From the NCBI GenBank assembly GCA_000708835.1, contig DF237050.1, forward strand, positions 139,296 through 203,295: a DNA stretch of 64,000 bases, written 5' to 3'. The position numbers were made by a program, and so were the translations under genes. This stretch comes from Klebsormidium nitens (Eukaryota > Plantae > Klebsormidiophyceae). The notes below the pieces were generated by a model that was not told the DNA's origin, made no database searches, and was given only the letters and a program-made list of their open reading frames with translations. Below are positions 36,649 to 41,907 of this stretch, piece by piece. Within the stretch, counting starts at the first letter, position 1. Each line of letters starts with the position of its first letter.

Positions 36649-39600
36649 TTGATGGAAGAGGAGAAGCCGCTGGAATGGCGGAAGATAGTCGAGATTCTCA
36701 AGAGGAAGGGCAACGAATTGCTCGCTGCACAGGCGGCTCAGGCAGCTCAGCTGCCCCATGCAGCCTCCCCCCCCTCTCAGGAAGCTGCACATACCTCCAC
36801 AGAGCCACACTCTGCAGCGAACCCCTCCACAGCTTCCCTAGCCGAACCCCCCCAGCCCACCGGTGGTTCGGCAGCGCCCCCCTCCAAAAAGAAGAAGAAG
36901 AAGAAGAAGAAGCAGGCGGCAGACTCGGAAGAGAAGCACGAAGAGCCAGAGAGCAGCGAACCTGGCAAGCCAGCCGGCGGGCCCGTCACACCTCCCTTTG
37001 TCTTTACAGCGGGGGCAAATGGAGCGGACGAAGGCTGGGTGCAAATGCCTCTTGGAGGGCGTGCGGTGATTGGTACAGCTCCACCCACAACCAATGAAGA
37101 CAAGAGCGGCGGGGTGGAAAACGATGCACTCCCAGGCAATGCACGGGTCGATCCAGGAACAGCGGCTGAGGGTGAAGAAGCCACAAAAGCATCATTGCTA
37201 GAAGCGGCCACTGATAGAGTCACGCCCGGTGATGTCGAACACTCGGAAGAGGCCCCGGCTGAGCCGAAATCAAAGGTGAAGAAGAAAAAGAAGAAGGGCA
37301 AAGGGGGGAAGGGGGTTGGAACGGAGGGTTCTGCACCGGAAGCTGAGGCGGGCAGCTCTTTACAACCCCCCAGGTCAGATCCGGCGGGCAGCGCTGAGGA
37401 GAGCCCAGCACAGGACGAAGGGGCTGAGCGCAGCCATGCTTCAGCAGAGGCGGCTGGCAGTTTGAATCTTGCGGAAGATGAGCGAGGCAAACGCTCTGAA
37501 AAGGGCGCCCAGGAGTGGCCCCCTGAGCAGCCCACTGGGTGGTCTGACACCGAGGAGGTCCCCGACTTTGTGTCGGACTCTGGAGGGAGCGACGGCGAGG
37601 AAGGGGAAAGAGATAAGAGCGGGGCACCAGAACGACGGGAACAGGAGGAGATGAGCGGAGCACAGGGGAAAAGGGGGCCTGAGGACAGGAGCGATTGGGA
37701 GGAGCGGTCGGACCTGTGGGAGGGCGAGGAGGGGGAAGGGGAAACTCGGAGTGGAGACGAGCGGAAGAAAGACGGGGACGAAGAGTGGGGGGAGCTGGAA
37801 GAGGACGATGTGGAGCAGCTGCTGATGCTGGGCCAGCTTCGGGAGGTGAGAGCTGCCATTGGCTTCTTCATTGATGTTGGTCTCACCAAGCTAGGGCCAT
37901 TGAGTGAGATACGGGAGTCCGTTCGTTGAGCATGGCGTACAGTGAAATGCTTTGGTCTCATGTGTCGCATGCGACACTTGGATTCGATTTGACCAGTGCT
38001 TGAAGTAACATGCAACCTGGAATACGTGGCCAACAAGTGCGCTTGCTCTATGGGTAGAAATGATGTACTGTGAATTGTAAGTACTCTTCATGGGCTTTGA
38101 CAATGCCAGACGGGGCCACTCGGTGGCACCTCCTGGTTAAAATTGGCGAGTAACGAAGAATTGCAGACCCATTGTCTGAAGCAGCCTTCCTGGAACAAGT
38201 GCGTGCTTGATGGAAATGGAACGCGGGCTGTCCCTGTTGCACCAAGTCGGCATCATCCCTCATAGAGCAGTCGGAATACTTGTCGTGCAGTCCGCACGCT
38301 TGGCCACTTTTCTTGCTTCTACACAATTGAAAGGCCTCAGAAATTATCGTCAAGTGGTGTTGTAAATCGTTTCGAATTGTCCCTTGTCTGCTACCTCTAA
38401 ATCGTAAACCACTTCCGCAGGCTACGAAGACCTCAAAGGTCGCCCCAGCCCGAAAAAAGCGCCCGGCTCCTCCGGCCCCCCAAAAACCCACCCAGACACC
38501 GAGCAAACCTCCAGACACCCAGCAGCACAGACCCGCTGCCCCCCCGACCCCGTTCCGGCCCCGGGGATCCCCCTCCGAGCGTGTCGAGCTGCACCTGCCG
38601 GCCGGCCGGCTGATTGTGAACCGGGCGGACTTTGACGCGCGGCCCGCGACGGCGCGATTCTTTGTGATCAAGAGCAACAGCGTGGACGACGTGCACAAGA
38701 GCATCAAGTACGGCGTGTGGGCCAGCACACCCTACGGCAACAAGCGCCTGCACGCGGGGTTCAAGGAGGCGTGCGCAGCGGATTCTCCCGCTCAGGTGTT
38801 CCTGCTCTTCAGCGTGAACGCGAGCGGGAAGTTCTGCGGAGTGGCCGAAATGGTGAGGATCCCTGAGTAGCCGCTCCGATCGTCTTTGCTGAGAAACGGA
38901 GACGGCCATAATCTGCGACTTGCTGGCTCTTGGCCGCGCTTCTTCGCCCATGCTGGAAGGACGAACGTGTAGGAACGTTAGTTTCGCGAAGTCTGAAAAG
39001 CTCTGGAAATGTTAGATCTGAATTGTGCAGAGTCCTCTCCAGTGAGCTCGCAGTAGATTTTCCTCTCACTTTGTCCACGAACAAAGGTGATAGTACCTCC
39101 TTATATGTAACGCCTGCAAGCAAAAGCGTCTGGCTAACAGTGCAGGAAGCCCCAGCAAACAGCAGTATTTGCGTCTCTTCCAGATGAGCGACGTCGACTT
39201 CGACACCTCCGTGGACGTGTGGCAGGAGGACAACTTGTGGACGGGCCGCTTCAAGGTGCACTGGCACATCATCAAGGTGCGCCGCTCATCCTCCCTGCTA
39301 CAGACATGCGAAGCGACCCTCTTATCGGCCATGGTGTTGCAAAGTAATCCCCATAAGTGTGCACAAAACTCGCACAACCTGGGTCTACTCTAAAGGGTCA
39401 AAGAGCAGAGTCAGAGCACGTGCGTCCAATCTGACACCTCGCGAGGATCGAAGATTCAACTCTCGCCAAAGGTTTATTGAGTCTCTTCTCGGATGTGTCA
39501 AAGTGATCTGTCGCGTTCAATAACCCGGTGCTAAAACTGCCTCCAGCAAAGCGCCGCCAGGTCTGACCCCGCATGGTTTCAGCAGCACGTGATCTCAGTA

Positions 39601-41907
39601 GGAGTCAGTCGAACAGGGACTTTCTGCTTGAAGGACCATGGCCCTTCTTTACCTGCGTGGCTGACTCCTCGTTACTTTATCCTGTTCCAGGACGTTCCTA
39701 GCCGCGAGTTCTACCACATCCGGGTGCCCAGCAACGAGAACAAGCCGGTGACCAACAGCAGAGACACGCAGGATGTGAGTCGCAAACACCGCCTCTCACG
39801 CATTACTCCATTGCATGCGAGCTTTTACAACCCTCCTGTCTGTCGACGGATTGCCTTCATAACGCAGTAAATTCCGACGTAAAGCCGTTCTCCACTCTTG
39901 TGTCAACGTCCGTGCTGCTGCTTCCACATGATCGCATCGGCCCTGTCACTTGAATCAAGGCCTCCAGTGTCGTGTCTGAGCTGCCAGCGCCTTCGCTGTC
40001 CCGACCTCCAAACAGGCATTTAGCTTGGCTGTCTATGTTCTTTTTGATCAGCCTCCCTGACGAACGATCTTCTTCCCGCCGCCATGGCAGTCCCTATCGA
40101 GACGCCTTCCATCTGCTTCAAAACTGATGTCGGGCCAATCAGAAACTGAGACAACCTCAGCCCTTTGAAACTGATTGCTGGCCTACCAGAGCGAGGTCTG
40201 TCTCAGCACGTTTCCCGCGCAGCGCCGCGGCTGACCTGCGCGTCTCCGGTGCGCAGGTGCCGTACGCGCAGGGGCTGGAGATGCTGGCCATCTTCGCGGC
40301 GTCGCCGTCCGTGAGCAGCATCCTGGACTACTTTGCGCTGTACGACACGCAGCAACAGCTGCTGCAAGAAGACCGCGACAAGGCCAAACTGCGCCCGCCG
40401 CCGCCAGGCAAGCCCCGCACTCCACGTAGCATGTGAAAATGCATCTGATACATAAGGGTTGACAATATGCAAAGCTAACGAGACTGCCGCATACCCTGCA
40501 GTCTTGCTTGCTTGAAACAAGTGATTGCGCCCTGATGGCAAGGTCTGGTAGCCAAGAAAGTCGTTCTTTGTGACGCTCGTCAGGAGCTGCTTTCTAGTCG
40601 TGTCTAGGGCACCATGGAAGCGCACTCTATTGTTAGGACACTGTCCCTTTCCTTTCCGGGGCCTCTTCAGGATCCCACGTTTGATTTGAAAGGATGTTCA
40701 AATGCAATGATGTAAGTTTGGCAGCATTTCTCAAACCTTGCTTGCAGTCCTGGGGACGAGCTTTCAATGTTTGTGCACCCGAGGTGACACGTGGAGTGTC
40801 CGTTTGCAGTTGCGCCCCTTGATCCGTGGGACGACAGACCGCAACCCCCAGGGCCGGGGTTCAGACCGAGGGGACCCGACTTCTTGTGAGCAAAACATGC
40901 GTCGTGTGCCACCCTCTTTCCTTGTTGAGAGCTGGAAAAAGCCAAGCAAGTCGGTGGTTGACTTCTGTCGCAGACTGCTTGATGTTGTTACTTTTTCACC
41001 CTGTTTGCAACCCCGTTGAAACGCCTACGTCAACCGTGCGCTTCAGTGGCTCTGATGCTCCGGGCCAGTTGGCTGCCAGCATGGTATGCTGACCTACGTC
41101 TTCTTTGCCCCTCTCTCTTTCAGCCGGCCGCCGTTCCCTCGGCCCCCGCTGGTGCCCCACAACATCAAGACCCGGCTGTGCCAGCGCTTCAGCTCGCCGG
41201 GGGGGTGCAACTACGGCGACCGCTGCCTGTTTGCACACGGGGTGCACGAGCTGCGGCCATTCCGTCCCCCTCCACCCGCGGGCCGCCCTCCCTTCTTCCC
41301 TGACGGCCGCCCCGCCTTCTTCCCTGACGGCCGTCCCGCCTTCTTCCCGCCCCCACCTTTTGGTCCCGGCGGCCCCCATCACCGGCCGCCGTTCTGGCGA
41401 CCGGACGGAAACGGAAACGGAATGGGTCCCGGCTTCGAAGGCCCCCGGCCCTGGTTGGGTCCACCGCCTGAGTTTGCCGGCCACGGGCACGGGCATCACT
41501 ACCAGCAACAACACCCTGCGTCCCGCCTGCTAGATGCCCTGGAGAATGGGAATGAAGGGTTGCGTCACGGCGCGGCTGGGCCGGGCGGGGATGACGTCAG
41601 CGGGGATGAGAAGGACGCGCAGGACGAGTACCTGCTGCAGCTGCTGACGGAGGGCGGCGCGGACAAAGGGCAGTCGGTGCCGGAGCCGGGGCAGGCTCCC
41701 GGGCTGGGCGACGGGAGCGAGTGGGCGGGGGGCCGGGAACACGAGGACGAGGAGGTGTGCTGCATCTGCTTCGAGCGGCCGATGGACGCGGCGCTTGAGC
41801 CGTGCCGGCATGAGCTGTGCCGACAGTGCGCGGAGCTGATGCGCAGCGAGCGGAACAGCTGCCCCGTGTGCAACGCGGAAATCGAGTCAATCTTGCCGAG
41901 AACTTGA
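36649..41907 (+). CDS. YTH-domain (YTHDF/ECT-type m6A reader) protein with C-terminal CCCH zinc finger and C3HC4 RING; 7 exons
   Basis: Exons 36649-~37845, ~38420-38852, 39184-~39277, ~39691-39774, ~40258-40407, 40810-40885 and 41124-41907 splice in phase. YTH: RFFVIKSNSVDDVHKSIKYGVWAST..GNKRL..VFLLFSVNASGKFCGVAEM..VDFDTSVDVWQEDNLWTGRFKVHWHIIKDVP..NENKPVTNSRDTQDV. CCCH: KTRLCQRFSSPGGCNYGDRCLFAHG. RING: CCICFERPMDAALEPCRHELCRQCAELMRSERNSCPVC. Confidence 0.85.

Follow-up and report, generated by a model that had tools for sequence, protein, structure and literature searches.

The window analysed here, a stretch of 64,000 nucleotides (nt) of Klebsormidium nitens contig DF237050.1, carries on its forward strand a gene in which a YTH domain, a CCCH zinc finger and a RING are very probably fused in one open reading frame (ORF), and the explanation that we favour for it, with reasonable though far from full confidence, is a single seven-exon gene encoding an RNA-binding RING-type ubiquitin (E3) ligase that is targeted by a YTHDF-type reader of N6-methyladenosine (m6A). 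The gene model (36652-41907; Table 1) is uninterrupted over 937 residues and reads, from the N-terminus, as a disordered region, a Pro-rich linker, the YTH domain, a second Pro-rich linker, the CCCH finger, octapeptide repeats, a helix-like motif and the RING. The region is eukaryotic in character: its exons are rich in GC, and its GT-AG introns measure 300-600 nt. Judged by its sequence, the locus is one of the three YTHDF protein genes of K. nitens, a streptophyte (charophyte) alga, because the translation of exon 1 is identical over ~398 residues to Kni DF1 in the accessible portion of S1 Dataset of PMC10617740 and the translations of the YTH exons match the row Kni_DF1 in the accessible alignments of that paper. 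The first-pass annotation of this DNA had begun the gene at 36649, where the triplet is TTG; its start codon is instead the ATG three nt downstream, at 36652.

Used as a query, the last exon returned two relatives among predicted proteins (P0001 and P0004), each preceded by YTH exons in the same orientation on its contig, and a word-indexed search with exon 1, which recovered fragments of related loci only, added L003 and L004/L005. L001 and L003 stem from run SRR23617307 and have a last exon ~90% identical to that of the window, while L002 and L004/L005 stem from the soil-type JGI (Joint Genome Institute) metagenomes 3300060284/85 and are ~50% identical to the window in the last exon; L002 and L004 share ~88% DNA identity with each other. 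The four orthologous loci (window, L001+L003, L002 and L004) come from no fewer than three distinct genomes, assembled independently from three sources. The exon order is the same as in the window in all related loci, and L002 and L004 each give an open 885-residue model of seven exons with intron phases 0,0,0,0,1,2, again as in the window.

The decisive point for the fusion is the passage from the YTH exons to the last exon. The first-pass annotation had connected the two through a GC-AG intron and a small Pro-rich exon, and this connection holds: intron 5 and exon 6 join in frame, with phases 1 and 2, to an exon 7 that begins at 41124. The GC donor occupies the identical codon position everywhere (G/GCAAGC in the window and L001; G/GCAAGT in L002, L004 and L005; the slash marks the splice site), and exon 6 has a length of 76 nt (window, L001) or 73 nt (L002, L004), which in either case is 1 mod 3, as required to carry phase 1 into phase 2. 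Exon 6 also stands out as an island of conservation between its introns. Comparing the window with L001, exons 5, 6 and 7 are 91%, 87% and 90% identical, with 0, 0 and 7 gap columns (the latter being one copy of the octapeptide repeat), and introns 5 and 6 are 44% and 57% identical, with 115 and 17 gap columns. Comparing L002 with L004, exon 6 is 92% identical and its flanking introns are 83% and 82% identical, and gap columns amount to 0 in 2658 nt of exons and 120 in 3549 nt of introns. Moreover, 5 of the 6 differences between L002 and L004 in exon 6 are at the third base of a codon in the predicted frame (binomial chance ~0.02), and the alternative frame that was examined (+1) contains a TGA. 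The ratio of nonsynonymous to synonymous substitution rates (dN/dS) for the same pair is 0.39 in exon 1, 0.04 in the YTH exons, 0.16 in exon 6 and 0.28 in exon 7.

These comparisons also bear on the idea that the CCCH-RING exons are an annotation or assembly artefact, namely the decaying remnant of something that happens to lie beside a YTH gene. The unusual architecture alone would invite it, and we find it barely credible, as the arrangement is repeated in independent assemblies from three sources, the frames are open, the exons are free of insertions and deletions between L002 and L004, and the CCCH-RING exons have dN/dS values below 0.3.

A more serious alternative holds that two adjacent genes have been joined by coincidence of frame, with the YTHDF gene ending at a TGA and a separate CCCH-RING gene starting near 41086. 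The first-pass annotation had noted a stop after the YTH domain near 40437; the TGA exists, its exact position is 40434-40436, and it is reached if intron 5 is not removed. Several observations weigh on the side of two genes. The putative donor is of the non-canonical GC type and the window stop lies 9 codons past it; the ATG at 41086 opens an ORF of 273 residues; and gene callers, working without intron modelling, list the YTH and RING parts on related contigs separately. Likewise, L002 and L004 have two Met codons shortly before the finger that permit a stand-alone ORF, which is the source of the P0004 call. Against this stands the conservation in four loci of the frame, the phases, the GC donor and the bridging exon, together with substitutions in exon 6 that are of the coding type in the fused frame. 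The ATG at 41086 is the only one in the window able to start a separate CCCH-RING ORF, yet it is embedded in the polypyrimidine tract that belongs to intron 6, and L001 has ATAAGC in its place, and exon 7 starts directly after this tract and its AG (41122-41123). The TGA at 40434-40436 sits in a stretch that is missing from L001. Two genes would furthermore leave only ~650 nt for a 3' untranslated region (UTR), a promoter and a 5' UTR, and no free-standing homologue of the CCCH-RING module was found by the protein-library searches or the metagenome scan. A GT donor at 40426 in the same phase was considered and rejected for its poor context (CAC/GTAGCA) and the deletion of this region in L001. 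Since the phases, the GC donor, the exon 6 island, the coding-type substitutions and the non-conserved ATG at 41086 combine, we regard the fused reading frame as real with high confidence and two genes as improbable. The proposal of the first-pass annotation that YTH, CCCH and RING belong to one protein is thus upheld by a predicted open frame that runs across the GC-AG intron and the small exon in all four loci. A mixture of YTH-only and fused isoforms is possible, given the Met codons that precede the finger in L002 and L004 and the plain reader that would arise from retention of intron 5, which leads to a stop within 9, 12 or 24 codons in three lineages and thereby to a YTH-only product.

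Turning to the parts of the fused protein, exon 2 alone matches the Pfam YTH profile (positions 1-61) with 77.9 bits against a cut-off of 22.1, and exons 3 and 4 carry the match on to position 120 of 135. W498 (38718-38720, in GVW), W555 (39220-39222, in DVW) and W561 (39238-39240, in NLW) align with the three Trp columns of the solved YTHDF1 and YTHDF2 domains and are kept in L001, L002 and L004; these three columns form the aromatic cage for m6A and are presumably W432, W486 and W491 in YTHDF2 numbering. Thus, the first-pass description of a YTHDF/ECT-type YTH domain with three cage tryptophans agrees with both the profile match and the alignment. When the N-terminal half of the domain is compared with solved structures, YTHDF1-3 are matched with E-values (expectation values) of ~4e-20 to 1e-18, YTHDC1 with ~6e-8 and CPSF30 with 1.5e-5, and we therefore assign the domain to the DF type. 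PMC10617740 likewise places Kni DF1 among the DF proteins.

The last exon contains a CCCH finger (Pfam zf-CCCH, 32.5 bits, cut-off 20.5) with the spacing C-x8-C-x5-C-x3-H and a KTRLC lead-in, as the first-pass annotation had read it, and with an FAHGVHELR tail. Its best solved relatives are the tandem-finger proteins 6nzl (2.8e-17), TIS11d/BRF2 (1rgo) and TTP (1m9o), followed by Roquin-1 and Unkempt. The terminal C3HC4 RING, also recognised at first pass, is borne out by its Pfam score (Table 1) and by a complete set of eight zinc ligands that all four orthologues keep. Among solved RINGs, it comes closest to RNF141, CBL/CBL-B, RNF123 and MEX3C. In the phmmer alignment, three residues of the RING, an Ile, a Leu and a Pro, fall opposite CBL positions (presumably I383, W408 and the Pro of CPFC) which we take to be contacts to the ubiquitin-conjugating enzyme (E2). 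Between finger and RING, a low-confidence AlphaFold2 helix at exon 7 residues 161-176 accompanies the conserved DEK(D/E)xQDEYLLQLLT motif, which may be a dimerisation or E2-side helix. The FFPDGRPA octapeptide is present in one copy more in L001 (about 2390-2480) than in the window, and the repeat number therefore differs between close relatives.

In the mechanism that we propose, the YTH domain, whose aromatic cage is intact, would dock on m6A in an mRNA, and the adjacent TTP-type finger would contact single-stranded RNA nearby that is probably rich in U and A; UAUU-like half-sites are the known targets of TTP-type fingers. The C-terminal RING would then recruit a ubiquitin-charged E2, leading to ubiquitination of proteins on the same methylated mRNA, or of the reader itself, and hence to an altered mRNA fate. 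MEX-3, Roquin, Makorin and Not4 are understood as RNA-binding ligases that work in this way. Through the weak GC donor of intron 5, the cell may in addition be able to make a plain reader that lacks the ligase part. The m6A binding, the action as a ligase and the switch between isoforms are predictions from sequence, and the substrates named above are conjectural. The coupling of m6A recognition to ubiquitination, which the first-pass annotation had suggested, is a reasonable expectation from the intact domains, and we hold the chances that the fused protein works as an m6A-guided E3 to be evenly balanced.

The fused protein could instead be an RNA-binding scaffold whose RING serves a structural, dimerisation or RNA-binding role, or whose YTH domain has drifted to a ligand other than m6A, as in Mmi1 of fission yeast. 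Some features count in this direction and against a guided ligase: the recognition loop has one extra residue (WQEDNLW versus WSQDKW in YTHDF1 and YTHDF2), and the position directly after the last RING Cys, the linchpin position, is Asn or Ser in the four orthologues. Many very active RINGs have an Arg there, and some RINGs are inactive on their own. An AlphaFold2 model of exon 7 built on a four-sequence alignment was uninformative, with a mean pLDDT (predicted local distance difference test) of 38.8, and lends the ligase no help. PMC10617740 calls algal YTHDFs divergent and likens some of them to Mmi1; the same paper, however, finds the YTH cages of charophytes intact. Moreover, none of the three cage tryptophans or eight zinc ligands varies among the orthologues, the YTH exons are very strongly constrained (dN/dS as above), and the Ile, Leu and Pro of the RING align with the presumed E2-contacting residues of CBL. 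On balance, we judge a non-ligase scaffold, or a reader of another ligand, rather unlikely, and prefer the m6A-directed ligase.

The predicted protein brings together features of several known systems. With the YTHDF/ECT readers (human YTHDF1-3, Arabidopsis ECT1-11) it shares the DF-type YTH domain, the three cage tryptophans and a long disordered N-terminus, but canonical YTHDFs end soon after the YTH domain and have no further folded domain (PMC10617740), whereas the Kni DF1 model runs ~290 residues past it with a CCCH finger and a RING, and so departs from the canonical architecture. Like the RNA-binding RING ligases MEX-3 (KH-KH-RING), Roquin (RING-ROQ-CCCH), Unkempt (CCCH x6-RING), Makorin and CNOT4/Not4 (RING-RRM-CCCH), it combines an RNA-binding module and a RING in a single chain; the likeness to MEX-3 extends to the position of the RING at the extreme C-terminus and to MEX3C being among the nearest solved RINGs, and that to Roquin-1 and Unkempt to the match between fingers. 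None of these ligases has, to our knowledge, a YTH domain, and the signal read here would be a base modification instead of a sequence or stem-loop. The finger resembles those of TTP/TIS11 in its spacing, KTxLC lead-in and FAHGxxELR tail, but there is one finger here as opposed to a tandem pair ~18 residues apart, and the remaining protein is unrelated. Plant CPSF30-L and apicomplexan CPSF4-YTH also have CCCH fingers and a YTH domain on one chain; theirs are three CPSF30-type fingers before a DC-type YTH domain with no RING, whereas here one TTP-type finger follows a DF-type YTH domain, whose match to the CPSF30 YTH (1.5e-5) is far poorer than that to YTHDF (4e-20). A precedent for a YTH protein that works with a RING E3 is Mmi1, whose partner in trans, according to the abstract of PMC5614563, is Not4/Mot2, the RING ligase of Ccr4-Not, the two together controlling RNA-linked regulators. 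In that case, two separate proteins act in a complex, as opposed to the single chain predicted here. Not4-type ligases also carry a CCCH finger, and Mmi1, as far as we know, does not read m6A.

Table 1. Features of the YTH-CCCH-RING gene in the window (a slash marks a splice site).
Feature	Position	Strand	Description
Exon 1	36652-37845	+	Start codon and 398-residue acidic Lys-rich disordered N-terminus; donor GAG/gtgaga
Island EKxLEW..VEILKxKGNE	36661-36717	+	Exon 1; four-way alignment
Island K9	36886-36912	+	Exon 1; four-way alignment
Island GWSDTEEVPDFVSDS	37537-37581	+	Exon 1; four-way alignment
Island EEWGELEEDDVEQLL	37780-37824	+	End of exon 1; four-way alignment
Exon 2	38421-38852	+	Pro/Lys-rich linker and first half of YTH, including W498; Pfam YTH 77.9 bits
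Exon 3	39184-39276	+	YTH recognition loop with W555 and W561; Pfam YTH positions 63-93
Exon 4	39691-39774	+	YTH NENKPVTNSRDTQ strand/loop; Pfam YTH positions 94-120, 24.7 bits
Exon 5	40257-40407	+	Final YTH helix and short tail, ends in phase 1; 'VPYAQGLEMLAIFAASPSVSSILDYF' in the Kni_DF1 alignment row (accessible part)
Intron 5	40408-40809	+	GC-AG; donor CAG/GCAAGC, acceptor AG 40808-40809
Exon 6	40810-40885	+	Pro-rich bridging exon of 76 nt, phase 1 in, phase 2 out
Exon 7 (last)	41124-41907	+	Pro-rich linker, CCCH finger, octapeptide repeats, helix motif, RING; stop 41905-41907
CCCH finger	41164-41238	+	Single, TTP/TIS11-type; IKTRLC lead-in, GVHELRP after; invariant in four orthologues
Tandem repeat FFPDGRPA	41281-41348	+	24-nt unit, ~3 copies (Tandem Repeats Finder: 2.8 copies, 93% matches)
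DEK(D/E)xQDEYLLQLLT motif	41605-41649	+	Probable helix ~35 residues before the RING; nearly invariant in four orthologues
RING	41758-41871	+	C-terminal C3HC4, C-x2-C-x11-C-x-H-x2-C-x2-C-x10-C-x2-C; Pfam zf-C3HC4_3 44.4 bits (cut-off 27)

Exon 1 matched no family in the Pfam scan and holds four islands that are conserved in the four-way alignment of the window, L001+L003, L002 and L004 (Table 1). Two runs of Lys are invariant in the four orthologues, an (AAG)8 tract giving the K9 island and a K6 run at 37270-37300, and may be nuclear-localisation or RNA-contact elements; unlike them, the rest of the N-terminus diverges fast. The island at the end of exon 1 is likewise invariant in the four orthologues, and its acidic W-x-x-L resembles, at the level of pattern only, an ATG8-interacting motif (LC3-interacting region/ATG8-interacting motif, LIR/AIM). 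Within the YTH domain, exon 4 is 75-80% identical in L002/L004.

At a distance of ~1.4 kb from the start of the YTH gene, and in head-to-head arrangement with it, lies an F-box/LRR (leucine-rich repeat) gene (32948-35206, reverse strand), and this neighbour is kept in identical orientation in all related loci (L002 76-2890, L003 6427-7632, L004 5917-8728). A TIP41-like ORF (22403-23161, reverse strand) is also located upstream of the YTH gene, as in L004. Opposite exon 1, an antisense ORF of 419 residues (36777-38036, reverse strand) was rejected as a gene, being a Ser/Pro-rich mirror of the GA-rich coding strand and thus a by-product of composition. Elsewhere in the window, two long ATG-started ORFs (55111-57906, forward strand, 932 residues; 43541-44971, reverse strand, 477 residues) match no Pfam family, and the 477-residue product has no entry in the gene-position index. 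Scanning the entire window for Rfam families and tRNAs gave no hits.

To gauge how widely the architecture is distributed, the last exon was compared exhaustively, by HMMER, with 1.84 billion protein cluster representatives, and the best 150 matches were inspected. End-to-end matches to the CCCH-RING module were limited to P0001 and P0004, both from related loci downstream of YTH exons; the other matches among these 150 were multi-CCCH proteins, a related RING was present only in P0001, P0004 and P0108, and a YTH domain was found in none of the 150. The K. nitens proteins of the window itself did not turn up in either protein library or by exact look-up, although relatives at 46-88% identity did; the word-indexed searches with exons 1 and 7, which gave fragments of the related loci only, used a length filter (0.55-1.75x) that would pass over a 937-residue protein when the query is one exon. 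The only match of a metagenome scan with the exon 7 alignment (L006) was discarded as an unrelated tandem-CCCH gene. As far as these data go, the CCCH-RING module and its predicted fusion to YTH appear confined to a small Klebsormidium-like group, a YTH domain joined to an unrelated RING being outside the scope of these searches.

The first-pass annotation had not recognised the architecture from the literature. The gene itself is not new, as it is already catalogued as Kni DF1 (PMC10617740), whereas our literature search found no text that names a YTH-RING protein. PMC10617740 (Flores-Tellez et al. 2023) is the only paper we found that treats Klebsormidium YTH proteins, and a RING, zinc finger or ligase in Kni DF1 goes unmentioned in its text and preprint (text, not figures). 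The nearest case in the literature is that of the coral eTudor-YTH proteins with B-box fingers (PMC7641849). The gene thus joins two known kinds of protein, the YTHDF readers and the RNA-binding RING ligases, in an architecture that is undiscussed in the texts found.

The reach of the finding is limited by the small Klebsormidium-like group in which the fusion was found. We know of no YTHDF readers thought to act other than via factors recruited through their disordered regions, and a reader with its own ligase would, if the explanation is true, directly tie an RNA base modification to protein ubiquitination and extend the RNA-binding E3 ligases by a new type of RNA-recognition module. A bolder view, possible if doubtful, is that of a natural reader-ligase fusion that attaches ubiquitin, on methylated mRNAs, to proteins or to nascent chains, with the conserved weak GC donor of intron 5 as a switch between plain reader and reader-ligase; taken as a 'Rosetta stone', such a fusion would predict that the YTHDF readers of land plants and animals partner with a separate RING ligase. 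The protein could also be a natural template for m6A-targeted effector tools. Its host is a streptophyte alga near the origin of land plants, where what YTHDF proteins originally did is a matter of open debate (PMC10617740).

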